Origin: Rebecca billardiae RCC1528
Taxonomy: Eukaryota; Protista; Haptophyta
Direction of reading: 5' to 3'
Assembly (NCBI GenBank): GCA_965240325.2
Contig: OZ251227.1
Location: 682,001-746,000, forward strand
DNA length: 64,000 nt
This document shows positions 37,175-64,000 of the stretch, piece after piece (the stretch's first letter is position 1; the number at the start of each line of letters is the position of its first letter). The notes beneath the pieces were generated by a model. That model saw only the letters and a list, made by a program, of their open reading frames with translations, made no database searches and was not told where the DNA came from. Position numbers and translations under genes: made by a program.

Positions 37175-37408
37175 GTGGCAGTGAGCCGCGCAGCGCAGGT
37201 GGATCGCGCTCCAGCAGCTCAAGGCCGCGCTCAAGCCATTCCGCATTCGATCGCGGTGCAGGCTACGCCTACTAAGTACTATGCTCTGCCACTAGCAGCT
37301 ATTGGGACCGACTTGTCAGACGATCGGGCACTGCCGCCGACGAACCAGGAGACCGCCTGCGCCGTCCTACCTAGCGGTATCGTTAAATCATACGGAATGT
37401 ATGAGTAG
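37175..37408 (-). repeat. Dispersed repeat family A, internal segment (degenerate copy)
   Basis: Aligns by eye to the reverse complement of 52433-52632 and to 57337-57565. Confidence 0.8.
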
Positions 37409-41510: not shown

Positions 41511-41972
41511 ATGGCGTGTTGGAGGATGATCCTGGTCCTGGCCGTGGCCAGTTTGCCCCAGATCGCCGGTTGGCACAGCGGCCACGTCCGCGCGCAGCTG
41601 AGCTCGGTAAGCGTACACATGCTCAGCACCACCGACGACTTGCCAGCCGCGCAGAGTGGCGCATCACCATCTGTATTCGCGCCAGCGATCATCCTGTACA
41701 CGAAGCATGGTTGCCCACTGTGCGAGGGTCTCGAGGCGAACCTGCAGGACGTCCGGCAGTATGTGAGCTTCGAGCTGTCCAAGCGATATATTGAGGACAA
41801 TGCTGAGTGGGAGGAGGCCTACCGGTACGAGGTACCCGTGCTCGTGGGCGCAACTCCAAGCGGCGGCGAGATGGAGATCCCGCGCCCGTCTCCACGCGCG
41901 TCTGGTGTCTTCCTCCTGCGCTGGCTGCGCAAGCACTACTTCGAGCAGCTCTCAGCGGCCCAGTCGCAGTGA
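41511..41972 (+). CDS. Glutaredoxin-like (DUF836-type) protein, probably plastid-targeted
   Basis: ILYTKHGCPLCEGL...YIEDNAEWEEAYRYEVPVL; N-terminal signal peptide. Confidence 0.85.
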   Translation: MACWRMILVLAVASLPQIAGWHSGHVRAQLSSVSVHMLSTTDDLPAAQSGASPSVFAPAIILYTKHGCPLCEGLEANLQDVRQYVSFELSKRYIEDNAEWEEAYRYEVPVLVGATPSGGEMEIPRPSPRASGVFLLRWLRKHYFEQLSAAQSQ

Positions 41973-45282: not shown

Positions 45283-45382
45283 CATTTAACGTCGTGGCAT
45301 GCAACGAGCATGGCGTCAGCGTCAGTAAGCAGTAGCAGATCGGTCAGCAGGGACAAGCACCAGGAGCAGCGCTCCTCGGCAG

Positions 45383-45415
<33 letters not shown>

Positions 45416-45575
45416 GTAGTCGCCCATCACTCCATCGCCGAGCGGAAGCCCGACGCACAGTCTAGGGAGTCTGGCTTCGACGCACGCGCGCCACCGCGGT
45501 GATCGCGGTGCCACGCGTCGTCAGCCGACGTCGTCTCGAAGTAGTCGTCGTGCGCAGCGCCCCCGCGAGCGCGTA
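45283..45575. repeat. Dispersed repeat family B (copy with C31 tract)
   Basis: Aligns with 62644-62922; poly-C at 45383-45413. Confidence 0.85.
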
Positions 45576-46252: not shown

Positions 46253-47107
46253 TCAGACGTTCCAATCGATGGGCTCGTGGCCAAGCTCGGCGAGAAGCGT
46301 GTTGCAGCGCGAGAAGCAGCGGCTACCGGTGAATGGCGTCGGGCCCTTGCTGTTGCTCAGCGGGCTCGGGTGTGAGCTCGTGAGGACGCGGTGCCTTCCG
46401 CGGTCAATCTGGCCGACCTTCTTCTGCGCGGGTAGGCCCCAGAGGATGCAGACGACGCCCTTGCCAGGACGCTCCAGCACCGCGCGCACGACAGCGTCCG
46501 TGAACTGCTCCCAGCCCTTCTTCTGGTGACTGTTTGCCGCGCCCTGGTCCACGGTCAGGCACGAGTTGAGCAGCAGCACGCCTTGCTGCGCCCATGGCAT
46601 CAGTGACCCGACCGAGCCGCTCGCAGTCGTGGTGCCGCGCGAGAAGGGCACAGCCGGGTCGTCGTGGAGCTCCTGGAATATGTTCCGCAACGAGGGCGGA
46701 AATTTGCACCCTGCCGTGTCCGCGATCGAGAACGCCAGCCCGTGCGCCTGCCGGGGGCCGTGGTATGGATCCTGTCCGAGGACGATCACCTTCACGTCTG
46801 CGAGCGGGCACGCATCGAGAGCGCCGAAAACCTGCTCGGGCGGCGGGAAGACGGGGCCCGCGCGGCGGCGGGCCCCAACGAAGTCGACGAGCGCACGAAA
46901 GTAGGGCTTCTTCGCCTCGCCCCGCAGCGCCTTGTCCCAGTCTGCGTGCGCGAGCTCGAGGAAGGCCTCAAATTTGTCCAGATCGTCTGATCGGCTTGCT
47001 TTGGCAGGGCGGGCGCCCGTCTCTTCGCGTGGCGGCGCGCCATCGTTGGCGTTGAGCTCGGCCTCGGGCTTGCGCTTCAGGAACGCCGTCATCTTCGCCT
47101 GTGCCAT
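46253..47107 (-). CDS. UNG: Uracil-DNA glycosylase, family 1
   Basis: PIP-box-like QAKMTAFL; GQDPYH, PPSLRNI, GVLLLN, HPSPLS, IDW motifs. Confidence 0.97.
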   Translation of the reverse strand: MAQAKMTAFLKRKPEAELNANDGAPPREETGARPAKASRSDDLDKFEAFLELAHADWDKALRGEAKKPYFRALVDFVGARRRAGPVFPPPEQVFGALDACPLADVKVIVLGQDPYHGPRQAHGLAFSIADTAGCKFPPSLRNIFQELHDDPAVPFSRGTTTASGSVGSLMPWAQQGVLLLNSCLTVDQGAANSHQKKGWEQFTDAVVRAVLERPGKGVVCILWGLPAQKKVGQIDRGRHRVLTSSHPSPLSNSKGPTPFTGSRCFSRCNTLLAELGHEPIDWNV

Positions 47108-47714
47108 CTTCCGGGCACCACTGCGTCCGAGGAGGCGAGGACGAGCGCGCAACCGGGACCGCGGGAGGTCCGCCGTTGGGCAGCCTTGTGCGCCGACACT
47201 CGTGAAGTCCGGCCGGGGCCGGCTGCACACGTGCGTCCGCCCCGGCCGGGTCGCCTCGCCCGCGATGCCGGCCGCTCCGCCGCTGCGGCGGGCCCTGCAC
47301 GGCGTGGGAGTTGTAGAGTGCACGGCTCGGCTGTGCGGCCGCTGGCGCGCACGCCGAACGAGCTGGCGTGGTGCCGCGACTTTTCGATGGCATCGCGCGC
47401 CGCAGCGCTCCGCACGCCTAGCCCGGCTTCGCCTTTGACTCGCGCCTCCGGTCAGCCGTCTGATGCCCGCAATTGCGCCTGAACCGCCGGGCTGAACCCA
47501 GCTAGCTTACTGTACCTAGTTGGTAGTACCTGAAACCACAACCTGCCACAACCTAGTGGCGCACCTCTCAGCTGAGCGTGCACGTGCCTTGTGCGACGTG
47601 CGAGTGCCGCAGTGCGTTTGCGTCCGGCAACCGTACGGCTTCATGGGCGGTGACAGTTGGCGGGCGTCAATCTCGCCTGCCTGCGCTGTGTGCGTCTCTT
47701 ATTCTGAGTAAACT

Positions 47715-49298: not shown

Positions 49299-50554
49299 CT
49301 ACTTCTTCTTCGCAGCTAGCTTCTCCTGGTACTTCGCGACCAGTTCCTCCTGCTTATCCCTCGACGTGGCCATATGCCTGTAGTACTCCATGGAGAACTC
49401 GCCCTTGCCCTGCGTGACACTGCGCAGGTCGGTGCTGTACCCAAACATGTCATCGAGGGGCACGTGTGCCTCGACGACCACGTTCCCGCCCTCGTGCGTC
49501 TCCACGTTGGCCACGTTGCCCTTGCGCTGGTTGAGCTGACCGACGATCGTGCCCTGCGCGCGCGCCCCGCGCGCGTCGCGCGCCGCGGAAGTCGAGCCGG
49601 CGTCAGGCGTGCAGGGGGATGCGGGCGGGAGTGGCCGCGCTCGCGCCGCCTCCCAGCCGTGCGGGCGCGCAGTGCGTGCGCCCCGCGCGCGCATGCGCAC
49701 ACCTGGTACTCCGCCGGCGCCTGCACCTCGACGGTCATAACCGGCTCAAGCAGGGTCGGCTTGCCGCTGTTGAACGCCGCCCTAAACGCCCCCTGCGCCG
49801 CCGAGCGGAACGCCATCTCGTTCGAGTCGACCGAGTGCGCGGCGCCGTCCTGCAGCACGACGCGCACGCCTGTCACCGGGTGGCCGGTGAGCGCGCCCTT
49901 CGTCAGCGCCTCCCTGAATCCCTTCTCGATCGCCGGCACGAACTCGGGCGGGATGTTGTTGCCCATCAGCTGGCTTTCGAACTCGTACGCCGACTTGGCG
50001 TCCTCCTCGAGCGGCTCGAGGTACCCCATCACGCGGCCGTACTGCCCCGAGCCGCCCGACTGCTTCTTGTGCGTGTAGTCGTACTCGGTGCGGCTGCGGA
50101 TCGTCTCTCTGAACGCGACGGCTGGCTGGCCCACCTCGCAGTCTACGCCGTACTCGCGCTTCATGCGCTCGACGTAGATCTGCAGGTGGAGCTCGCCCAT
50201 GCCCGAGATCACCGTCTCGCTCGTCTCCTCGTCCGTCGCCACGCGGAACGTCGGGTCCTCCTTGACGAAGCGCGCGGGCGCCTTTGAGAAGTTGGCGCTC
50301 GCCTCGCGGCTCTTCGTCTTGAGCGCAAACGAGATCACCGGGTCCGGCACGTACATCGACGTGAGCGAGAGGCGGACGGAGCCGTCGGTGAAGGTGGTGC
50401 CCGAGCGGCAGTCCACGCCGAACATCGCGACGATGTCGCCCGCGCGCCCCTCCTCCACCTCCTCCATCTCGTTGGCGTGCATCTGCACGAGGCGCGGCAC
50501 CTTGATCTTCTTGCCCTCGGCGACGTTGAGGATAGTGTCGCCGCGCCGGAGCCG

Positions 50555-50590
<36 letters not shown>

Positions 50591-51717
50591 CTTGCCCTCC
50601 TCGAGCTTGAAGGCGAGGCCGCACAGCGGCTTGTCGTCCTTGCACAGCAGCTCCACCTCCTTCTCCTCGTCCGCCGCGTCGAGCGCCACGTTGCGCACCT
50701 CGGTGGGGTTGGGCAGGTAGGAGACGACGCCGTCGAGCAGGCTGTGCACGCCCTTGTTCTTGTACGCCGACCCCATCATCACCGGCACGAACTTGAGGCC
50801 GATGGTGGCGCGGCGCACGGCGGCGCGGAGCGCGGGCGCGTCGATATCCTCGCCGAGCAGGTACAGCTCGGCCAGCTCGTCGTCCACGTCCGCCACGCGC
50901 TCGACCAGCTCCGCGCGCCGCGCCTCGCACTCGTCCGCCATGGCCGCCGGCACCGGCTCGCGCCGCACCGACTCGCCGTGGTCGCCGTCAAAGATGATCG
51001 CCTCGCGCTCGATGATGTCGACGACGCCGGTGTGCTCCGACTCGAGCCCGATGGGCAGCTGCAGCGCCGCCGCGTTGTACCGCAGCTTCTCGCGCAGCTG
51101 CCCGATCACGCCGAACGGGTTGGCGCCTTGCCGGTCGCACTTGTTGATGAACGCGATGCGCGGCACGTCGTACCGCGCCATCTGGCGCGAGACGGTGATC
51201 GACTGCGACTGCACGCCGGAGACGGAGCAGAGGACGAGGACGGCGCCATCGAGCACGCGCAGCGCGCGCTCCACCTCGATGGTGAAGTCCACGTGGCCGG
51301 GCGTGTCGATGATGTTGATCGCGTGGTCGTCCCATGAGCAGTGCGTCGCCGCCGACTGGATCGTGATCCCCTTCTCGCGCTCGAGCTCCATAAAGTCCAT
51401 CTTGGCGCCCACGCCGTCCTTCCCACGGACCTCGTGGATCGCACCGATCCGGCCCGTGTAGTACAGGATGCGCTCGGTCAGCGTCGTCTTGCCCGAGTCG
51501 ATGTGCGCCGAGATGCCTGCGCGCCGGAGGCGACCGCGCGCCGCGCCGCCACGTGCGCGCGTGAGACAGAGGAGCATGGCGCGGCGCGCGGCGAGACGCC
51601 CGCCAACGCACCGATGTTGCGCATGCGCGCCACATCGTACGCGCCGCCCGCCGAAAGGCGCCGTGCGAGCGCGGGCGCACTGAGCCCGCGTATCAGCGAG
51701 CGCACGCCGGCCACCAT
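49299..51717 (-). CDS. GFM1: Mitochondrial elongation factor G1, 3 exons
   Basis: Presequence [13 protein letters not shown]; [77 protein letters not shown]; introns 51517-51611 and 49554-49702. Confidence 0.96.
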
Positions 51718-52432
51718 GCTGCGCGTGATCACGTGGATGGATGCTCACGACCGCGGTTCGTGACTGGAAGTCGCGGCACCCCTCCAGAAGCTTCCGGACG
51801 GAGATGACCAACGTCCAGCCCGAGCGGGCACACAAAGGAGTTCTTATGAGCGTGGAACTTGACCCCGCATTTCCCGGCGAAGTGCCCCATCTCGGCGGGG
51901 CTGGCACGCTCGGCACACGCTCCTGAGCGCTCGCTTCGCGGTGTGGCAGGCCTTGGGTAGACCAGGCAGACATGTCGTGACCGCATTACCGGGCCATGCG
52001 CGGAGCACATCCGCGCTACGTGGCCTGCGCGCTGGACGGCTGAGAGTCAATGCCGACCCACCGCATTCCACTGCCCCGCATGCCCCCCGAGTCGCCTTCA
52101 GAGGGCGTCGACAAGCGCAGAGCGGGCGCGCAGGAGTTCGACCAACTCGTGTACCTTCTTGCAAGCACCAGCGGCGATGTCGCAACCCGAACCTTGACCA
52201 GCCGTGGAACTTGAGCGGCAGCAAAACACAGCATGGCCCAGGATCAAGTTACTGTAGCAGCGTGCGAGGAGGAGGCGCGGTGCGCGTCCGCAGCTGGCGA
52301 GAGGCGTCCGGAACGTGCCGTTCTCGGCCACGCCCGAGCGCTTCCCGCCGCCGCGGGCCCCGTGTACGCCCGTCGTCGCCCTCGCCGCGTGGGCGCCAAA
52401 CCGGGCTCAAGTTCCAACGAGTGCTCCATACA

Positions 52433-52718
52433 GTACTCATTCTATGATTTAACGACACAGGTCTCAGGACGGCGCCGCAGGTCTCCTGATCCGTCGTCGG
52501 AGTGCCCGATCGTCGACAAGAAGTCGGCGCTGGTGGCAGAGCATAGCCTGTAAACCGCGATCGAATGGCTTGAGCGCGGCCTTGAGCTGCTGGAGCGCGA
52601 TCCACCTGCGCTGCGCGGCTCGCATGCCACTGCGGCGTCAATCTCGCCTCTCGGCATCTCGCCTGCCTGAGCTGTGTGCGTCTCTTAACTTATTTCTTCT
52701 ATTATAATAAGTAAACTG
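52433..52718 (+). mobile_element. Longest copy of repeat family A: degenerate ORF C-terminus plus terminal segment
   Basis: ECPIVDKKSALVAEHSL*TAIEWLERGLELLERDPPALRGSHATAASISP runs directly into the conserved terminal segment ending agtaaactg. Confidence 0.6.
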
Positions 52719-52852: not shown

Positions 52853-54703
52853 CTAAACGTACCTGCCCAGATACTCGTGTCCGGCGAGCGGCAGCCGGAT
52901 GGGCTCGCCCGTCCGGATGGACTCCGCGATTTTCGCGTCGAGCTCAACAACGAGCCGTGCCAAGCTGTCCGCATCATCCTCGTCCTCGGCATCAGGCTCA
53001 GGCCTCGTCTCCAAGAGGCCCATCGCGAGCGGCTTGCCCCAGGTGACCTCCGTGCGGGTCTGCTGCTTGCTAAGAGGGAGCCCGTACACACTGACGTGCG
53101 CTCCAACATCCACGGCGCACACCAGGTCGATCGAGTGCTGCTCCGCACCTCCGCTCGCGAGGACGCGCCGGCGCGTCGCGAACTGGTTCTCGAGACTTTG
53201 CCGGAACGCGTCGCTCTCGTCGCTCTCGCGATCACGCGACGACGGCCGTGTGCCGTAGCGCTCCCACGCGTTGACGACCGCGTCGGCGCCGTCGCGGTCC
53301 TCGCAGAAGACCTGCCACTCGGGCTGCGCCGCCGTCAGCCGCATGTACAGCACGGCGCGGCTCAGGGCGATGCGCGAGCGCACGATCTTGGCCAGGAGCG
53401 CGCACACGTTCTGGTAGTTCTGCAGCCACTTCGCCAAAGGCTTGTGGACGACATCCCGCTTCGCCGGAGTGACGCCGCCCTGCTCGCGCATCGATCTGCA
53501 GATCGGCTTGTGCGCCTTCCAGTGCGCCCGCTGACACTCCTGGCTGCAGTATCGAGCGTAATTGCACCCCGCGCAGACACGCAGGCCCGCGCCCCCGCAG
53601 TGCACGCACGCCACCGGTTGCGAGGCAGCGCGGGCGGCCGCCGGCGCGCCCCCCGCCGGCGTCGGCCCCGTCTCGCCGAGTGCCGCGAGGACGTGCCGCA
53701 CGCCCGTCAGCTTGGACGCGCTGTCCACAGACAGCCGCTCGCGCACGTGTGCGCTCTCGAGGTGTGCGAGCACGGCGGCGCGAGAGCTGCCCACGAAGGC
53801 GTACTTGCCCAAGGAGCGCGTATCACGCAGAAGGAGGTCGAGCAGCACGTCGTCGATCAGGGCGTCCGCCTCGCGCCACGCCTCCGCGCGCCACGCCGCT
53901 GAGTACCCGCGGCTGGCCTCGTGCAGAGACGCGTCCGTGCGCGGCGTGGCCACGTACTCGGCGATCGCTGCGAACGCTCCCCCGCGCATCACGCCGGTCA
54001 AGTCCTGCCTCATGAGGAGCCCAGCGAGCAGGCACAACGCACGATGATGCGAGGTGCCGCAGGGGTCCGGCAAGCCTTGTGGCGCGCCTGGCCCGGGAAG
54101 AGCGAGCAATGGCGCGCGCAGCGCCCACGTGGCGGCACGTGCCAGCTGGGTGTGGAACTCCGCCGGCACAGACTCGGGCTCCGTGGAGAGCGCGGCAAGG
54201 GTTGCGTGCAGCAGCGCGTACCAGCCGGCTGGGTAGTTCTCCATCAGCGCGTCCTTCGTCAGCGCGTCGCACAGCGGGTCCATCACGCTTGCATCGAAGA
54301 AGAGTTGCCGGCCGCTGGCCGACGCCGCAAGGCTGGTGAGCACACCGTGTGGCAGGGGACTGGCAGCGTACCTGTTCCCCGGGTCGCCGCATGGCAGTGC
54401 CTGGGCGTCCATGATGGCAAGCCGAATGGCACGCCGAAGGGCCTCACGCCGTGCGTGTGCGATGGTCGCGTCATCCACATCTAGCGCACTTGCCAGCGTC
54501 CCGATCGCAAACAGCTTGCTGGTCGGCACGCGCTTTGCGTTGGGAAGCACCGCGTACGAGCCGTCCGCCGGGTTGTTCACGCCCACCAATAGCACGTCCG
54601 CACGGCCGTCGGCACCCGCCCCATCGGCAAAGGCGTACCGGCCATTCAGCTCGCGCCCGGCAGCACTCGTCAGGTCCAGCACGACCACAGGTCGCGACGC
54701 CAT
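52853..54703 (-). CDS. MYND zinc-finger protein with N-terminal SH3-like LNG domain
   Basis: CVHCGGAGLRVCAGCNYARYCSQECQRAHWKAHKPIC; N-terminal VVLDLTSAAGRELNGRY...GRADV...VPTSKL. Confidence 0.85.
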   Translation of the reverse strand: MASRPVVVLDLTSAAGRELNGRYAFADGAGADGRADVLLVGVNNPADGSYAVLPNAKRVPTSKLFAIGTLASALDVDDATIAHARREALRRAIRLAIMDAQALPCGDPGNRYAASPLPHGVLTSLAASASGRQLFFDASVMDPLCDALTKDALMENYPAGWYALLHATLAALSTEPESVPAEFHTQLARAATWALRAPLLALPGPGAPQGLPDPCGTSHHRALCLLAGLLMRQDLTGVMRGGAFAAIAEYVATPRTDASLHEASRGYSAAWRAEAWREADALIDDVLLDLLLRDTRSLGKYAFVGSSRAAVLAHLESAHVRERLSVDSASKLTGVRHVLAALGETGPTPAGGAPAAARAASQPVACVHCGGAGLRVCAGCNYARYCSQECQRAHWKAHKPICRSMREQGGVTPAKRDVVHKPLAKWLQNYQNVCALLAKIVRSRIALSRAVLYMRLTAAQPEWQVFCEDRDGADAVVNAWERYGTRPSSRDRESDESDAFRQSLENQFATRRRVLASGGAEQHSIDLVCAVDVGAHVSVYGLPLSKQQTRTEVTWGKPLAMGLLETRPEPDAEDEDDADSLARLVVELDAKIAESIRTGEPIRLPLAGHEYLGRYV

Positions 54704-54959: not shown

Positions 54960-56786
54960 TTAGCCACGCCAGGCGACGACAATATCGTTGGCAAAGCGCT
55001 GACGATAGCTGCGGTCGCGCTCCTCCTCTTGACGCCGCTGCAGCCGTTGCGCACCGCGCTGCGCCCTCGCCACTTTGCCCGCGAGGCGCTCGCGCGCGCT
55101 TGGAGCTGATTTCACGCGCTCGAGCTTGCCCGCGCTCGACGCCGGTGTGGGCGCAGCGTGCGCACGCCGGTCGGTGACCGCCGCGGCGCCTGGCTGCGCG
55201 TGCAGCGATGCACGCGCGTCCCCAGCGAGCAGCCCGCCCGCGGCGCTGGCGGAGACAGCCGCGCCGCACGCGGCATCGCGGCCAGTGTGCGCGCCGCAGG
55301 CATACTCACCGCCTGGTAAAGGCGGCGCCGGCAGGAGCGGCACGTCCATGCGGCCGTGGAACGGGCAATAGCCCTCCGCGTTGCGCACGGCGCACGCGCC
55401 GCCGTCCCGGCGCGGCAGGCCACACAGCCGCAGCCCGTCGCCCGCCGCATCTCTGTCGGTAAGGGCCACGCCGTGCGCGCGCGCGACGGGGATGGCGTCG
55501 TCCAGCTCGTCGGCTGCGTGGGCATGCACGAGCATGGGCGCCTCAAACTCGTCGTCCGCCTCGCTCGCTCCGCCGTCATCCGCGCTCACCGCCGAGCCGT
55601 CGCGCGCCGAAGGCGCGTCGGGCGCGGGCTCGCCGACTTGCAGCTGTGCGCACCGATCCATTGCGGCGCGCATGCCGTCGCACAGCTCGCCCGCGCGCGC
55701 GAGCAGCGCGGCTCGGCTCGAGCGCATCGCCTCATCGCCGTCGAGCTCGACGCGCGAGAGCGTGGCCAGCCAGCGCTGCACCGTCGGCATGAAGCGTCCG
55801 CGCAGCTCCTTGAGGTAGCCCTCGAGGCTCTCCGCCACCGCGGAGTTCTCGCGGCGCGCGTGCGCGACCGGCGCGCGCAGCGCGCCCAGCTCGACGGAGA
55901 TGGTGTGCGCGGCGTTGGTGATGCCCACGGCGCGGAGCACGCCGCTCGCGCGCCGGGCGGCGGCGGTGGCGCCGTCGTCGTCGCTCTCCTCGTACTCCTC
56001 GTCGGCGCTGCCCGCCTCGTCGAACGCGTCCTCCTCGGCGCTGCTCGCGGAAGCATCGCACGCGTCGGCGCCCGCTGCGGGTGCGGCCGCGCGCGCGCCA
56101 GCGGCGTTGTCGGCGGTGCCGCCGGCACCGTCGGGGCCTCCGAGCAGCGGCACGAGAATACTGAAGCACTCGCCCATCGCCGTGAGGAGATGCCGGATCT
56201 GCGGCTCGACCTCGTCCACCTCCGCCGGGAGCGCGGCAAAGCGCGCGCGCAGCAGCCGCGCCGTGCCCTCTCGGCGCGCAGCCTCGCGCACCGCGGGCTC
56301 GTCGTCCGCGCCGGCCGTGGCCGGCTCGGGGCCACGCAGGGCATTGAGATACCGCTCGCCAAGCGCCACCTGCCGAAGCCGGCTGCCGTGCGACTCGGCC
56401 CAGCTGGAAACCAGCTCGCGCGTGCGCGTGCTGAGCGCCTCCGCCCACTTTGGCGGCTTGGGCGGCCGCTTGAACGTCACGGTCGCCTCGAGGAAGGCGG
56501 GGAAGGCGTCGGCGAGGCGCGCGCGGAAGTGAGCAGAGCGTGCCCACAGCGCCGCGCACAGCTCGACCGCGAGCAGCCGAGCCTGCGCGTGCGCCCCGTG
56601 CAGCTCGTCCCACGCGCACTGATACACCTCGTCCACGTGCGACTCTGACACACGCGCGTGCGCCTTGACTTTGGCGAGCAGCGCGGGGTCGAGCGCATCG
56701 GCGGGATTGGCAGGCACGGTCCGCACCAGCTGGTGCACCACCCGCGCGATCCCCGTGCGGTGCTTCGCCGCGGCCTTTGGCGGCAT
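54960..56786 (-). CDS. UVSSA: UV-stimulated scaffold protein A (transcription-coupled NER)
   Basis: N-terminal LDPALLAKVK...HAQARLLAVELCAALWARSAHFR...FLEATV...PPKPP; C-terminal zinc finger CGLPRRDGGAC...CPFHGR; RERLAGKV...RFAN tail. Confidence 0.85.
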   Translation of the reverse strand: MPPKAAAKHRTGIARVVHQLVRTVPANPADALDPALLAKVKAHARVSESHVDEVYQCAWDELHGAHAQARLLAVELCAALWARSAHFRARLADAFPAFLEATVTFKRPPKPPKWAEALSTRTRELVSSWAESHGSRLRQVALGERYLNALRGPEPATAGADDEPAVREAARREGTARLLRARFAALPAEVDEVEPQIRHLLTAMGECFSILVPLLGGPDGAGGTADNAAGARAAAPAAGADACDASASSAEEDAFDEAGSADEEYEESDDDGATAAARRASGVLRAVGITNAAHTISVELGALRAPVAHARRENSAVAESLEGYLKELRGRFMPTVQRWLATLSRVELDGDEAMRSSRAALLARAGELCDGMRAAMDRCAQLQVGEPAPDAPSARDGSAVSADDGGASEADDEFEAPMLVHAHAADELDDAIPVARAHGVALTDRDAAGDGLRLCGLPRRDGGACAVRNAEGYCPFHGRMDVPLLPAPPLPGGEYACGAHTGRDAACGAAVSASAAGGLLAGDARASLHAQPGAAAVTDRRAHAAPTPASSAGKLERVKSAPSARERLAGKVARAQRGAQRLQRRQEEERDRSYRQRFANDIVVAWRG

Positions 56787-57336
56787 GCCGCGGCGGCCGT
56801 GCAGCGCACAGCCGCCCGCCAAACCGGTCGTCACCAGGCCGTGTCGTGCGTCCGGATGCACACGACCCGTCCGGAGCGAGCCCGGCGCAACGCATTGTGA
56901 TTGAACCTCGTACGGCTCCGGTCGAAACCAGTGTCCAGTGAACCACGATGTGTGAGCATCAAGCTGGGTGTCATCACAAGTGCCACATGTTGGTCGGCGT
57001 TGCCACCGTGGAGTCGCAAGGCGGCAACGACCGCGACGGCTTCACGCGCTCCATCCGTGGAGCCCAAAACATGCGGTGGTGGTCGAAAATCACAACAAGC
57101 TCGCTCTGGCGGATGGTGGCGACACTGCTACCGACCCCTAGGTGCAGTCGTACCATTCGGCAACATGAGAAAATGTCGTCTGCTGAGTCGTCCCTGGGGC
57201 CATCCTATGCCATAGGATTGAATTGACTATGGGATAGGATCGCAGTGGGATATCCGATTTTTCTAGTAGAAGTCGAAACTTGTAACTAACGAGGCCAGCC
57301 GATTTCCGGACAAACTCCTTGCGGACCAGTAGGTCC

Positions 57337-57565
57337 ATGCGAGCCGCGCAGGCAGCAGGTGGATCGCGCTACTTGAGTCCTGCGAGCAGCTCCGAAGCCC
57401 CAAGGCCGCCGCCTCGCCCTCAAGACTTAAGCTTTACGATCGCGGTGCAGGCTATGCTCTGCCACCAGCGCCGACTTCGTGTCGACGATCGGGCACTGCC
57501 GCCGACGAATCAGGAGACCCGCGTCGTCCTACCTGTGTCGTTAAATCATAGAATATTGTTGAGTA
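57337..57565 (-). repeat. Dispersed repeat family A, internal segment (degenerate copy)
   Basis: Aligns to 37175-37408 and to the reverse complement of 52433-52626. Confidence 0.8.
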
Positions 57566-57688
57566 TGCGCCGCCATCGTGATTCGCGCTCGCGGGTTTGG
57601 TACACGGGCCCTCCGGGCCCGCATTATTCCGAAAAAAGGCTGAAATAAAAAGGCGGGAACCGGCAGCCTGGTTCCCGCTCGCGTGCAG

Positions 57689-60600
57689 GAGCTCAAAGCG
57701 CCGGCTGCGACCGACGACTTGGCCAACGACCTTCCCGAGCGCGACGAGAGACACACGCACGAGTTCGACGAAGCGTTCAGTCAGTCATGCTCGAACAGGA
57801 GGGCAGGTGCGCGCATCGAGCACACCCAGGCGCCCGCGCACGCAACGTGCGCCGCGCGCGCTAGCATAGCTCACTCGGGTGCGGCGTCGCGCCGCTCGCG
57901 CTGCCGGGCCTTCATCAGCGACAGCAGTGCCATCCGCCAAGGAGAACCGTGCGCGCGCGCCTCGCGCGACGCGGCGGCGTTCTCGCGTCTGCCCAGACGC
58001 GTGCGAACTACCGCGCACGCGATGTCCCGACTCTGGCGCGCGTCCGGGCGGATGACTCACGCGACGATCCCACCTGGCGTGACGCGCGCGTGCATGCATG
58101 CGCGACACTTGCTGGCACGGCGGACTCACCGGCGGCGTGTGAGCAGCGGCGCGGATGACATGGACGTGGAGATCGTTGATTTGCCGGACGAGAATGCAGG
58201 GCGCGCGAATGACAAGTCCGAGGCGGCCAGCGACCTGCCACAACAAGCGGATGCTTCGCTCAAACAGCCCGTCGACGAGCGGTTCGCACAAGTCAACGTG
58301 CTGCACGCACACGAGGCGCTGCGCAGGGCTCAGGAAGCCTACGACGAGGCTCGCGCGGACCTACAGCACGCCGAGCAGACGAGGAAGCGCAAGGCCATTC
58401 AAAGCTCGCGCGTGCTGGAGCGCGGGTCCCTATGGGGTGTCCATGACGACGACACGCTCCAAGACCAAGATCTCTACGCAAAGCTCAGCCGATGCGAGGC
58501 GCACGTCAAGAAGTTGCGTCACGAGATGCTATGGAACGCGTTCAAGCCTTCCGTCGCGTCGGGCGACGCAGAGTTGGTGGAGCAGCAGCACGGCGCGCAA
58601 ACGGCGGCAGCCGATTCGTCGTCCGGCACGAGTGGCAGGCACGTGAACAGCACTCAGATCGAGGTCGACGAGGACCCTGCAAAGCTGCCGGCCCACGACA
58701 AGGTAAAGGCAGCGCTGCCCGCGCGGCGGCCTGCCACCGGTGAGCTCCCTGGCGCGGAGACCCGCGCGTATGCTCACCGCGCCGACACGCCCGCCGTCCG
58801 CCGTCCGCGCCTGCCTGCAGCCCTGCGACGACGACAAGTTGAAGGCCGCTTACAACTCGCTGCTGGACAAGCCCGGCGTGAAGCAGGCGCAGGTCGCCTT
58901 CGCTGCGCAACTTTCCAAGGCAGTGCTCTCGAAGTGGCAGCGTGGCCACTCGCAGATGTCCGAGCCCAACTCCCGCCGCCTGGCGGCCTGGTTCGAAACC
59001 GATGGCCCGCACCGCGTGCGCGAGGCGGCCGCCGCCGAGCTGGCGCGGAAGCAGACGGTCAAGGAGGCGGCCGAGAAGAAGGCCGAGAAGGAGCTGGCGC
59101 GGAAGCAGCAGATCAAGGCGGACAAGAAGGAGGCGGCCGAGAAGAAGGTGCGCTGCCCGCGCGCTGCGGCCTGCCACCGGTGAGCTCCCTGGCGCGGAGA
59201 CCCGCGCGTATGCTCACCGCGCCGACACGCCCGCCGTCCGCCGTACGCGCCTGCCTGCAGCCCTACGACAAGTTGAAGGCCGCTTACAACTCGCTGCTGG
59301 ACGAGCCCGGCGTGAAGCAGACGCGGGTCGCCGCCGCTGCGCTACTTGAAGATGCAGTGCTCTCGAGGTGGCGGGATGGCCACTCGCAGATGTCCGAGCC
59401 CAACTCCCGCCGCCTGGCGGCCTGGTTCGAAACCGATGGCCCGCGCCGCGTGCGCGAGGCGGCCGCCGCCGAGCTGGCGCAGAAGCAGGCGGTCAAGGAG
59501 GCGGCCGCCGAGAAGGAGCTGGCGCGGAAGCAGCAGATCGAGGCGGACAAGAAGGAGGCGGCCGAGAAGAAGGCCGAGAAGGAGCTGGCGCGGAAGCAGC
59601 AGATCAAGGCGGACAAGAAGGAGGCGGCCGAGAAGAAGGCCGAGAAGGAGCTGGCGCGGAAGCAGCAGATCGAGGCGGACAAGAAGAAGGCGGCCGAGAA
59701 GGAGCTGGCGCGGAAGCAGCAGATCGAGGCGGACAAGAAGAAGGCGGCCGAGAAGGAGCTGGCGCGGAAGCAGCAGATCAAGGCGGACAAGAAGGAGGCG
59801 GCCGAGAAGAAGGTGCGCTGCCCGCGCGCTGCGGCCTGCCACCGGTGAGCTCCCTGGCGCGGAGACCCGCGCGTATGCTCACCGCGCCGACACGCCCGCC
59901 GTCCGCCGTCCGCGCCTGCCTGCAGCCCTGCGACAACGACAAGTTGAAGGCCGCTTACAACTCGCTGCTGGGCGAGCCCGGCGTGAAGCAGACGCGGGTC
60001 GCCGCCGCTGCGCTACTTGAAGATGCAGTGCTCTCGAGGTGGCGGGGTGGCCACTCGCAGATGTCCGAGCCCAACTCCCGCCGCCTGGCGGCCTGGTTCG
60101 AAACCGATGGCCCGCGCCGCGTGCGCGAGGCGGCCGCCGCCGAGCTGGCGCAGAAGCAGGCGGTCAAGGAGGCGGCCGCCGAGAAGGAGCTGGCGCGGAA
60201 GCAGCAGATCGAGGCGGACAAGAAGGAGGCGGCCGAGAAGGAGCTGGCGCGGAAGCAGCAGATCGAGGCGGACAAGAAGGAGGCGGCCGAGAAGAAGGCC
60301 GAGAAGGAGCTGGCGCGGAAGCAGCAGATCAAGGCGGACAAGAAGAAGGCGGCCGAGAAGGAGCTGGCGCGGAAGCAGCAGATCAAGGCGGACAAGAAGG
60401 AGGCGGCCGAGAAGAAGGCCGAGAAGGAGCTGGCGCGGAAGCAGCAGATCGAGGCGGACAAGAAGGAGGCGGCCGAGAAGAAGGCCGAGAAGGAGCTGGC
60501 GCGGAAGCAGCAGATCGAGGCGGACAAGAAGAAGGCGGCCGAGAAGGAGCTGGCGCGGAAGCAGCAGATCAAGGCGGACAAGAAGGAGGCGGCCGAGAAG

Positions 60601-62507
60601 AAGGTGCGCTGCCCGCGCGCTGCGGCCTGCCACCGGTGAGCTCCCTGGCGCGGAGATCCGCGCACTGTGTGCTCACTCACCTCCCCCACGCGCCCGCCGC
60701 ATCCGTGCTCAGGCTGAGGCACGTGCGCTACCGCTAGGCGCGCCTGCAGCATCCTTATCTCGCAACCCTGCGGCGAGCCGGCGACCACGCGCACTCGCGA
60801 GGCAGGCGTGGCGTGCTCATCGCAGTCCGTGCCCGGCGGTGCCCTCTGCGTGCCGCGCAGGCCAATGCAGGCTATGGTGCTGTCGCACACCTGCTGACCG
60901 CCATGCCCACCGATCCCGCCGAGGGCCAAAACGCATGGCAGCACTACCGCGACGGTGCAGCCGTGGCTGCATTCACCGAGCAACTTCTTCCGTATCTCCG
61001 GGACCCGGTCACCATGGACGCTTTGATCGCCGCCGATGTTCCGCATGACGAGCTGTGGAAGCACGTGCCAGACGAGTTCGTCCGCAAGATGATGAACGAG
61101 CAGGGCGCGACCGTCGCGGAAGTCAACGACATCCTTGCGTGGCTGCTTGGCCGCATCGTCCAGCCCGACCTTCTCGTGTCCGTCACACAGGTGGAGTTGC
61201 CGCCCGACGGCGACTACGGTGAGGACTGGCGCAACGACCCGCAGGCGCTGGAGAGGGTGGTCGCTTTTGTGCACACGGAACAGCACGCTGCGGCCGTCGC
61301 GCTGCAGACGCACGCCGTCCACGTGCCCGCGAAGGACGTGTACGCGCTGGGTCTCTTCCAGCTGCCCGCGTCCGCCGGGGCAGCGAACGACGCGATGGAG
61401 GAGGAGGCGCCCGCAGAGTTCAAGCGCTCGGGCGTTTCACAGATGGCAAGCTTCACGGCGGCAGCCGTCGCCGAGCTGGCTGTCGCGGCAAGTACCAGCG
61501 AGAACAAGGCGCATGCCGTGATCCGGGCCTATCCCCGCTTAAGTGCACGCACAGCCACCAGCAAACCACGGAGCGTCGAGGCTCTGCTGAAGCACGAGGA
61601 CGAGAAGGTGCGCGTGGGCGCACGGCATTTGCAGGAGATCTTCAACCAGTGGTCGCGCGCGTGCACGGCGTGGAGCGCAATTGTACAAGCGCAGGTCGCG
61701 CCGAAGGGGGACCGCATCGCCGCGTACATGAGGCAGTGCGCGGAGCTGAGCCCATTGATGAGGGGCGCCCCGCTGCCGGCCCGAGTCAGCGCCACTCGTG
61801 GCGCGCGCAACGCGTTGCCGGTCTTGACCGGCTCCCTGCATGCCGACAGGACGATTGCGACTCCCAATGCGCGGATGCATCTCGGCATCAACTCCAAGGA
61901 CGCGGTGTTTGTCGGCATCTTCCGGGATGCAGACACCGGCGACTTCTGCCAGCTGCACATCCACATGCGGGAAGGGCCGTTTGAGGCGCTCGTGATGTCG
62001 AGCTTCGTCGCCGGAGCCGACCCCATCTTCCTCGCGTTTGCGCCGGGCGCGAGCCAGGGCCTCGGCCTCGGGCAGGGGCGCGTCGTCAAGCTTGGCGGCG
62101 CCGTGGTGCACACGATGCATGGCTGCGCACCGTCGCCCGTCGCGCGCATCGCGGGCGAGCAGGTGCGCACGCACCACGTCAAGGTCGACTGCGGCATGGG
62201 AAGGCCGGCGGAGTGGCCTGCCCGCATGGCCGGCGGCGGCGCGGCGGCTGGGCCGACGGGCCTGCCGTTCGTGCAGCTCGTCGTCGGCGATAGCCAGTGC
62301 CTGCCGGCCGACGCGCCCTTCCCCGCGGCGGCCACGTTCGTCGTGGACGCGCAGGCGAGTGCCCTCTTCGAGTACACACGGCATGCCGCCATGGCACCCG
62401 GGCTGGCGAGGGCGATGGGGGCTGAGATCGGTGATGGTGTGACGCTGGCGGAGCCCGATCCGGCAGCCCTCCAGGCCATGCGCGACGGCCTGATCAACCG
62501 CCTCTGA
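57689..62507 (+). CDS. Multi-exon protein: N-terminal coiled region, three tandem XRE/Cro-like HTH + (AEKELARKQQIxADKKxA)n units, large C-terminal domain; 5' end uncertain
   Basis: Phase-0 introns 58703-58820, 59148-59260, 59813-59925 and 60604-(60712/60860). Exons 58821-59147, 59261-59812 and 59926-60603 are all multiples of 3. HTH-like GVKQxxVAxAAxLxxAVLSxWxxG. Final exon open to 62507. Confidence 0.75.
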
Positions 62508-62574
62508 GCTACTGAGACATTGCGACGATATGAATAAATAATACTGTTATTCAATAAGACGGTGACGATTAACA

Positions 62575-62577
<3 letters not shown>

Positions 62578-62645
<68 letters not shown>
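62578..62645. repeat. (TA)n microsatellite
   Basis: Direct observation. Confidence 0.97.
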
Positions 62646-62922
62646 TAACGACGTGGTGATGCAACGTCGCAGGCGTCAAAGTCAGCAAGCTGTAGCAGCA
62701 TCAGATCGAGCAGCAGAGTCAAACACTCAAACACCAGGATCAGCGCTCCTCGCCGTCGTCCCCCCCCCCCTCGTAGTCGCCCATCACTCCATCGCCGTGA
62801 GCGGAAGCTCGACGCACCGTCTGGCGTCGACGCGCGCGCGCCACCGCGGTGGTCGCGGTGCCACGCGTCGTCAGCCGTCGTCTCGAAGTAGTCGTCGTAT
62901 GCAGCGCCCCCGCGGGCGCGTG
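62644..62922. repeat. Dispersed repeat family B (copy abutting a (TA)n tract)
   Basis: Aligns with 45283-45575. Confidence 0.85.
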
Positions 62923-63819
62923 CATTGCGTCAATCTGAGGTGGGCCGAAACGAGTGTTTGGCAGACGTCGAGGAAAAAACATGGCCGCCCCTGATTGGCT
63001 GAGGCTTTAACACCCTTCAATAGCGCTCGAGAGCGCAAGATTCCCGTAATAGGGAGGTCCGCAGGGACTCTTCAATCTTCCCATCGTCGCGCTTCGAGGA
63101 CCAGCTCCAGCTCCGCCTTCCGACCGAGCCACCGAGGGGAGGTGAAGCTGGCGCCCTGGCCTTTCCCGGTCGAACACCTGCTCGCTACTACAGCTCGGGC
63201 TGCGGTCCGAACACGGCGTGGCAGAATGGCGCCAAGCAGTAAGGTGATGGACGCGGCTGGGCGTTGACCGTTGCCCAAGACCGGCGGGTGCTGCGCGGTA
63301 AATTGCTCGTGCGCGGCGGGCCGGTCAGTTGGAGTCCGCGCTCCGCAGCGCGGAGCACGTGAAGCGAACAGAGTGTCCGCAGCCACAGATGCGGTGGTCA
63401 GCTCATGCAGGTTCGTGATCAACCAGTTCTCGCGCGGCCATCAACACCGCCACGCCCTGCCCCTGATCATCTCGTCGCTCGAGAACCCGCGCGAGCGGGA
63501 AATGGATGGGTCGGGCATGGCGGGCATCGAGTCCTACCTCTTCTTGCAGTGCTCCCTGCAGCCGCAGTCACTGCTCGACAGCATGGGTGGTGCAGTCAGG
63601 TCGGGAGCACCGTCAGAGCCCATTGCCTTGCCAAGGCTGGTGTACTTTGACCGAAGCCACTTCTGCGCGGAGGCGGCTGGTGACGCCATCATTGCCAATC
63701 GCGCCGGCCGCGAGTCACATTCAACACCGACGACGAGGCGAGGCGCGGAAGAAGCTGCGGTGGCTGCTGCTGTACAGGTCCGGGGTGCCCAAGACTAGGG
63801 CGATAACGGCCATCCTACG

Positions 63820-63995
63820 GTGCTGCCCGGTGAGAACGTGCTCCGATGATCATCCGATGATCATAGTGTCTGTGCGCCGCGCCGACAGGCACCCCCGCCG
63901 CGGCACTATTCTCGTGCAGTGCTGCCCGGCGGTGAGAACGTGCTCTGATAATCATGATAGCAGTCTGCGTCTGTGCGCCGCCGGGCACCGCCACT
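63820..63995. repeat. Two degenerate ~100-bp-period tandem units
   Basis: gtgctgcccgg(cgg)tgagaacgtgctc...gtctgtgcgccgc...ggcacc present twice. Confidence 0.75.
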
Positions 63996-64000
63996 TTTCC

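Follow-up and report, generated by a model that had tools for sequence, protein, structure and literature searches.

The three-module array and its gene

In the window, that is, the whole stretch of 64,000 nt that was analysed, we found that Rebecca billardiae carries an array of three phase-0 exons, each directly 3′ of a near-identical intron (table 1). The lengths of exons 1, 2 and 3 (327, 552 and 678 nt) are all divisible by 3, and each exon encodes an XRE/Cro-C1-type helix-turn-helix (HTH) domain and a charged helical spacer of 45–162 residues. The frame of the upstream exon is already open from 57683; its predicted helices and basic motif may be read as an amphipathic helical segment with a nuclear signal, and it was without a family match in the Pfam profile search. 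The long 3′ exon is probably fused to the array, judging from the sequence. Neither stops nor frameshifts were found over about 3.7 kb of exon, and the GC content of third codon positions (0.84–0.90) matched that of neighbouring genes. Exon indels were multiples of 3, and intron indels were not. No Rfam family was identified in 56000–64000. Dispersed repeats flank the locus on both sides.

Table 1. Features of the locus (positions in the window)
Feature	Position	Strand	Description
Upstream coding exon	58160..58702	+	Open frame in phase with the array; likely start ATG 58160; acidic start; predicted amphipathic helices about 58283-58417 and 58472-58543; basic RKRK motif 58382-58393
Intron 1	58703..58820	+	118 nt, GT-AG, phase 0; splicing inferred from sequence
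Exon unit 1	58821..59147	+	XRE HTH 58839-58997, recognition helix 58914-58943; 45-aa charged helical spacer
Hypervariable island, unit 1 (codons 19-37)	58887..58943	+	Equivalents 59321-59377, 59992-60048
Intron 2	59148..59260	+	113 nt
Exon unit 2	59261..59812	+	XRE HTH 59273-59431; 122-aa spacer 59447-59812 of 54/66-nt repeats
Intron 3	59813..59925	+	113 nt
Exon unit 3	59926..60603	+	XRE HTH 59944-60102; 162-aa spacer 60118-60603
Probable intron 4	60604..60860	+	5′ half copies introns 2/3; acceptor uncertain
Long 3′ exon	60861..62507	+	ORF 60813-62507; orphan protein
Candidate AspH-type 2-oxoglutarate/Fe(II) dioxygenase core	61839..62189	+	Weak profile support; H-x-D 61839, R-x-H 61872, distal H 62109, R-x-H strand 62166; 34-aa insertion
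AATAAA, candidate polyadenylation signal	62533..62538	+	25 nt past the stop codon

Introns 2 and 3, which a preliminary description of this DNA had called almost alike, differ by a single A/C, and the shared 3′ part that it saw in intron 1 proved to be 95 nt identical to intron 3. The unit 1 intron is as young as the split between units 2 and 3. The fourth donor, at 60604, carries the 5′ half of the repeated introns; candidate in-frame AGs for its acceptor lie at 60737, 60749 and 60860, and a micro-exon is possible. A competing donor-like GTGAG occurs inside every intron. Short-read contigs from two sequencing runs begin at 60627, and the first base that only intron 4 has (60657) follows exactly 30 nt later. 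A k=31 graph would be expected to break at this point if the intron is repeated, so at the intron level an assembly artefact does not by itself account for the repeat, a failure that the preliminary description had allowed for.

Homologue searches were run exon by exon. No homologue was found in the protein searches or in the search of 1.8 billion representatives; since the collections searched are largely prokaryotic and restricted in length, the blanks do not show absence in algae. The sole match of the representative search, P0002, was a repetitive bacterial Ig-domain protein and was rejected as spurious. Viral and metagenome scans and exact look-ups gave no homologue, nor did a tblastn comparison of the C-terminal domain with phage and plasmid sequences.

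HTH units and their differences

The XRE/Cro-C1 identity proposed from the letters alone was borne out by PHROG (E 8e-5), by a language-model (ESM) feature match of 0.94 to the HTH_3/HTH_31 clusters, and by an alignment to a phage XRE profile that runs over 55 columns without a gap. Moreover, in hhalign a phage XRE alignment matching P22 c2, ImmR and DdrO was hit with probabilities of 93% and 89%, a support that is partly circular since the seed of this alignment was unit 1's best tblastn match. The suggested Pfam check detected the family at subthreshold strength: unit 1 scored 16.6/18.5 bits, under the curated cut-offs of HTH_3 (23 bits) and HTH_31 (27 bits), and units 2 and 3 gave no HTH match. 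In common with XRE/Cro-C1 proteins (PF01381 HTH_3, PF13560 HTH_31; P22 c2, ImmR, DdrO), the units show the four-helix pattern along the 55-column alignment, the conserved Q, the core hydrophobics, S-x-W and G. In contrast to the known members, the array is eukaryotic, split by introns, present in three copies per chain and below the Pfam curated cut-off. Eukaryotic lambda-repressor-like domains include the CUT repeats (tandem in CUT/Cux), POU-specific, HNF1 and MBF1. Despite this likeness in fold, the array had no Pfam match to these families, and its closest profiles were phage XRE proteins.

Units 1 and 2 differ by 18 nt over 80 aligned codons, and the 13 differing codons counted earlier, none of them silent, were exact. 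Nine of the changed codons had been assigned to the HTH motif and were located in codons 19–37; 14 of the 18 differences fall inside this 57-nt stretch, the hypervariable island, which is enriched in A/T-ending codons. Between units 2 and 3 the two D>G changes were recovered, but exon 3 opens with a D>N that had been missed, and the earlier list also lacked a deletion of 6 nt where exon 2 begins, as well as the minisatellite tail described below. Only frame +0 runs without a stop through the compared cores of both unit 1 and unit 2, and it stays open in exon 3. Every other frame that might make the differences silent is interrupted by a stop in one unit or more and still entails at least seven amino-acid changes. 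By base, unit 1 has A at 8 of the 18 differences and unit 2 at 5, and the other 5 involve A in neither unit, so a diversity-generating retroelement or other adenine-templated change was rejected. Mosaic shuffling among the three units was unneeded, because the patterns of variable sites agree with a simple tree, (unit 1, (unit 2, unit 3)).

The amino-acid-only changes lie on the surface formed by helix 2 and the recognition helix, where they reach positions H0, H1, H6, H8 and H9; H3, a code position, is invariant between units. In Cro/CI complexes, the code positions include H1 and H6, and contacts to DNA are made by H0 and H9 (PMC6649833). Helices 1 and 4 are nearly invariant, and variation covers the entire exposed face, helix 2 included. 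None of the 6 hydrophobic-core columns was changed, as against 9 of 22 HTH-motif positions varying (Fisher P=0.023), and the variable columns were the less conserved ones among 29 phage XRE proteins (P=0.007). In units 2 and 3, the helix N-cap shows S>E, positions H0-H1 read E-D, and the turn contains L.

The differences were clustered beyond chance (nucleotide scan, 0/20000 shuffles; codon scan, P=0.0045). Within the island, pN was 0.33 and pS 0.03, with P=1e-8 against intron and silent sites. The absence of silent changes was only moderately beyond chance (P about 0.01–0.05): when neutral evolution was simulated under core constraint and GC bias, the probability of no silent codon was 0.015–0.03, or 0.04–0.05 with codons 28–29 as a single event. 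Since units 2 and 3 are almost identical, the selection signal comes down to one pairwise comparison of two HTH types, itself picked out in a genome-wide scan. Furthermore, dN/dS tests assume a tree, an assumption broken by repeat units under conversion (PMC3890296). Diversifying selection on the HTH surface is plausible from this sequence pattern.

Spacers and the 3′ exon

The spacer tail is a 54/66-nt minisatellite of 13 copies with K/E variants at two sites and no silent variants; silent sites may thus be constrained array-wide. The spacers are net basic and 53–55% charged, with no Pro or Gly and 10–11% large hydrophobics. A single alpha-helix would be expected to have more than 50% charged residues, no Pro or Gly, no heptad and opposite-charge pairing at i+4; opposite- and same-charge pairs at this spacing numbered only 22:17 and 31:23. 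If fully helical, the spacers would span about 7, 18 and 24 nm (roughly 20, 54 and 71 bp). The single-alpha-helix KER of CAF-1 is likewise long, basic, K/E/R-rich and devoid of Pro and Gly, and lies beside an HTH-type domain (PMC10335832). By analogy, the spacer could measure or bind DNA. It differs from the KER in its minisatellite origin, its Ala/Gln-rich composition and its barely enriched opposite-charge pairs.

The 3′ exon is predicted to contain a small five-helix bundle (60960–61160), a helical middle and a beta-rich end. A SAM-domain reading of the bundle was rejected, as Pfam, PDB sequence and fold searches gave no support. A weak AspH-type iron-oxygenase-like motif may be discerned further along, although no significant Pfam or NCBIfam match was obtained for this region. 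Its candidate iron triad, H-x-D...H, has the spacing of PF05118 (H313/D315 and a G-x4-L-x5-H block), and a chain test on blocks not used for choosing PF05118 gave P=0.005. The whole-domain match to PF05118 was 2.4–2.8 bits, reached by about 0.5% of shuffles (partly circular), and hhalign gave a probability of 1% (E 0.044). As in the AspH/proline-hydroxylase branch, H-x-D, R-x-H, G-x4-L-x5-H and a final x-H-x-x-V-D strand follow in the same order, but the exon has a 34-aa insertion, misses the invariant Asn and has a shifted Arg register. Both single-sequence folds of the C-terminal region had a pLDDT of 36, too poor to interpret; the candidate-core model was all-beta, and fold searches with it were empty. 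Nucleic-acid dioxygenases of the TET/JBP and AlkB types had no Pfam match up to E 10, in a search whose filters limit sensitivity.

Origin and possible role of the array

The best explanation overall, to which we give about an even chance jointly with the reading that a haptophyte-like alga carries here a lineage-specific gene for a nuclear protein, is a recent or homogenised XRE triplication with selection for a changed DNA target on the unit 1 surface. One intron+exon module (an XRE HTH with its helical spacer) would have been tandemly triplicated very recently, or else its uniformity would have been kept by unequal crossing-over and gene conversion. Each HTH may recognise a short DNA half-site through helix 3, and the basic spacers may allow simultaneous binding to several sites that lie apart, not to one uninterrupted word. 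The unit 1 HTH surface would have stayed unlike those of units 2 and 3 through selection for a changed target, while the remainder was homogenised. More speculatively, the array might deliver C-terminal domains, possibly an iron/2-oxoglutarate hydroxylase, to the bound sites.

A possible though somewhat doubtful alternative is duplication followed by relaxation, in which unit 1 works and the ancestor of units 2 and 3 gained near-neutral surface changes, through CpG-type transitions and a complex event at codons 28–29 or through a short conversion patch from a paralogue; silent changes would be absent by chance and codon-usage constraint. Such decay agrees with the drop of the XRE profile score (21.3 > 15.4 > 12.7 bits), by which units 2 and 3 move off consensus, with the fall of net charge from +4 in unit 1 to +1/+2, and with the CG/CA type of 5 of the 10 A/G differences. 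GC-biased conversion can also mimic positive selection (PMC3278478), and the whole-core test was non-significant (P 0.1–0.3) when the bias was taken to run from AT to GC only. Nevertheless, the expected silent fraction within the island stays at 0.28–0.30 under GC bias, and a conversion patch should carry silent differences too. Decay should strike core columns as well, and none was struck. Relaxation alone leaves a 25% divergent island beside a 0–1% divergent intron unexplained.

It is very unlikely that the variable surface is a protein-contact or DNA-mimic face caught in an arms race, in which a viral or transposon protein might be the opponent, and not base-reading. The variation does extend beyond base-contact sites over the whole exposed face, and units 2 and 3 gain acidic residues, but the changes concentrate on the canonical DNA-facing motif, with helices 1 and 4 nearly invariant, and the spacers are net basic. 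Slighter still is the probability of an untranscribed relic, transposon cargo or partial assembly artefact, which the orphan protein, the repeats in both flanks and the GTGAG inside each intron would suit, but which the long open frame, the neighbour-like GC3, the AATAAA past the stop and a short-read graph break fitting a true repeat speak against. Cut-and-paste transposon cargo was rejected, since terminal inverted repeats are lacking and the left and right flanks are unmatched.

PRDM9 arrays are defined by homogenised repeat DNA with amino-acid-only change at contact positions (PMC3890296). The array resembles them in its tandem DNA-binding-type units, homogenised DNA and contact-surface change, and possibly in a fused modifying enzyme. 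The PRDM9-like pattern reported earlier held at moderate significance for one pair: the flanks are homogeneous, and the surface that faces DNA differs by amino-acid changes only. The description of the array as rapidly diversifying was not supported beyond one comparison of two HTH types, and nothing was found to tie the gene to conflict with transposons or viruses. The array departs from PRDM9 in having HTH instead of C2H2 domains, three units in separate exons with long spacers, and 9 variable positions instead of 3. With HTH units 45–162 residues apart, there is no contiguous code of the kind that zinc fingers read. No exon had a Pfam match to PR/SET, KRAB or SSXRD domains or to zinc fingers; given the missing zinc fingers and SET domain, the three spaced units and the lack of a contiguous code, membership in the PRDM9 family was rejected. 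A homogenised scaffold with a fast-changing contact surface is also seen in TALE repeats. In the literature, we found no description of such an array built from XRE HTH domains in an alga.

An independent PRDM9-like targeting system in haptophytes, in which diversifying HTH readers and helical rulers would steer a fused hydroxylase to fast-changing DNA, is an unlikely reading; transposons, endogenous viruses and recombination sites are the targets imagined for it. If alleles and binding do not confirm a fast-changing contact surface on a homogenised scaffold, the gene would be an orphan regulator with a recent exon triplication. If they do, the array would represent an independent origin of the PRDM9-type design to which spacer length adds a second variable, and units 1 and 2 would be two natural variants for direct comparison.

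Structure and identity of the repeated exon

At this locus an exon encoding an XRE/Cro-C1 helix-turn-helix (HTH) domain and a charged spacer has genuinely been triplicated, and recently. The three-unit intron+exon array of the preliminary description was recovered: a single base separates introns 2 and 3, both 113 nt long, and intron 1 shares its last 95 nt (3') with intron 3 without a mismatch. The exons measure 327, 552, and 678 nt, with phase 0 throughout. Exon 2 starts with a 6-nt deletion and exon 3 with a D>N change, and the tails carry a minisatellite (54/66 nt, 13 copies). Exon indels all come in multiples of three and intron indels (7 and 2 nt) do not, as expected if the exons are coding and the introns removed by splicing; splicing at the array junctions is probable. 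Short-read contigs from two runs start at 60627, 30 nt 5' of the first base found only in intron 4. At that start point, a k=31 graph would break if the reads contain the repeated intron. A G|GTGAG donor-like site also lies inside each intron (approximately 58740, 59180, 59845, and 60636); splicing from it would put the transcript out of frame (phase 1 for intron 1, phase 2 for the rest) and could yield alternative or unproductive transcripts.

The XRE assignment made earlier agreed with several kinds of match. Unit 1 gave sub-threshold hits to HTH_31 and HTH_3 (E 0.003-0.008) and a hit to phage transcriptional regulators (E 8e-5), and its language-model features matched XRE clusters (0.94). 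A phage XRE alignment, built from the best phage match to unit 1, retrieved P22 c2, ImmR, and DdrO from PDB and aligned with units 1 and 2 over 55 columns without gaps (probability 93% and 89%), a test that is partly circular because its seed derived from unit 1.

The remainder of the gene and its surroundings

Features of the locus and its neighborhood
Feature	Position	Strand	Basis or remark
Open upstream exon	58160-58702	+	putative helical stretches, RKRK motif
Three intron+exon units	58703-60603	+	window sequence
Fourth splice donor	60604	+	window sequence
Downstream ORF (3' exon)	60813-62507	+	coding-like codon use; AATAAA 3' of stop
Dispersed repeat, ~220 nt, 77-91% alike, 3 copies in window	57336-57554; 52439-52626 (reverse); 37183-37392		
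Second dispersed repeat, 76% alike	62646-62921; 45287-45574		
TA microsatellite	62578-62645		directly before repeat copy 62646-62921
Glutaredoxin-like protein gene	41511-41972	+	Pfam
Uracil-DNA glycosylase-like gene	46253-47323	-	by eye
Elongation factor G-like gene	49316-51973	-	by eye
UVSSA-like gene	52853-54703	-	by eye
MYND-finger protein gene	54960-56861	-	Pfam

In-frame acceptors would connect the fourth donor to the downstream ORF, and the array is probably fused to it. Querying the exons one by one, we found no homologues of the ORF's protein in any collection searched (mostly prokaryotic, length-limited). Its motifs follow an order (H-x-D, R-x-H, G-x4-L-x5-H, x-H-x-x-V-D) similar to that of the AspH/proline-hydroxylase branch; the candidate domain does not look like TET/JBP. 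An AspH-type profile from 45 viral proteins (five checked, 5/5 matching PF05118) retrieved proline hydroxylases and AspH from PDB and aligned to the 3' exon at the expected place with weak scores of 2.4-2.8 bits, reached by about 0.5% of shuffles (a partly circular test), and with an hhalign probability of 1%. The two blocks that had played no part in selecting the family chained in the expected order (P=0.005), and E was 5e-5 once a 34-residue insertion chosen by hand was spanned with X (post hoc); single-sequence folds of the region were uninformative. The chance that this candidate oxygenase-like domain is real appears about even. A predicted five-helix bundle at 60960-61160 (pLDDT 60-78, single sequence) has a SAM-like helix pattern, a reading for which no database support was found.

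One copy of the ~220-nt repeat lies directly upstream of the gene, and comparison of the left and right flanks gave no terminal inverted repeats. Also upstream, at 57602-57620, a short hairpin (GGGCCC) precedes an A-rich tract and could be a promoter element or a mobile-element end. At 62561-62562 in the 3' flank, one short-read contig has GG and another AA, reflecting either heterozygosity or a second near-identical copy.

Divergence of the units: selection or chance

Within the 80-codon core that the units share, the same 13 codons (18 nt) counted previously separate unit 1 from unit 2, none silently, and the two D>G changes reported between units 2 and 3 were found. Fourteen of the 18 nucleotide differences fall within codons 19-37, an island over the HTH motif (nt scan 0/20000 shuffles; codon scan P=0.0045). 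Within the motif, 9 of 22 positions vary; they hit none of the six columns with a hydrophobic residue in 80% or more of 29 XRE proteins (P=0.023) and occupy columns less conserved in those proteins (P=0.007). In the recognition helix, numbered after PMC6649833, H0 (S/E), H1 (K/D), H6 (K/R), H8 (Q/R), and H9 (R/D/G) vary. H1, H6, and H3 are the three code positions (PMC6649833), and the first two are variable while H3 is invariant across units. Judged from sequence, the DNA-facing surface is the sole site of notable divergence.

The island has pN 0.33 and pS 0.03 (P 0.005-0.04), and its comparison with intron plus silent sites gave P=1e-8, a value that presupposes a common history, which gene conversion can disrupt. 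A GC-biased effect can mimic selection (PMC3278478). The coding strand shows an asymmetry between 58833-59072 and 59267-59506: of 11 transitions, ten are A/G and one is C/T (P=0.01), five of the A/G being of CG/CA type (CpG context). Under pure AT-to-GC bias the whole core loses significance (P 0.1-0.3); the island, whose codons end in A/T more often (5-7/19 vs 3/61 in the rest; P 0.001-0.016), retains it. In simulations that included GC bias and a constrained core, P(no silent codon) was 0.015-0.03, or 0.04-0.05 if codons 28-29 count as a single complex event. The tail repeats carry no silent variants either, so silent sites may be constrained array-wide. Support for a non-chance pattern is moderate, coming from one pairwise comparison picked from a large scan.

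The main rival, that the differences are decay or chance, is possible but rather doubtful. It is favored by the poorer XRE profile fit of units 2 and 3 (15.4 and 12.7 bits vs 21.3 in unit 1), the replacement of their N-cap Ser by Glu, and the fall in motif net charge from +4 to +1/+2; the binding of these units may be altered, weak, or absent. PRDM9, a zinc-finger array, shows the same signature of change, and such repeats fall outside the scope of tree-based tests (PMC3890296). The proposed likeness to PRDM9 held for the evolutionary pattern alone, amino-acid-only change on the DNA-facing surface; the gene is not a member of that family.

The spacers after the HTHs (45, 122, and 162 residues) are 53-55% charged with a net charge of +6 to +15 and no Pro/Gly; as full helices they would extend over about 7, 18, and 24 nm, the length of 20-70 bp of DNA. 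With such lengths the HTHs are unable to read one contiguous code and would contact half-sites that lie apart; a basic helical spacer that binds DNA has a precedent in the CAF-1 KER helix (PMC10335832). The best reading, in which we place middling confidence, is that the gene would encode a multivalent DNA-binding protein whose specificity has been altered by selection.
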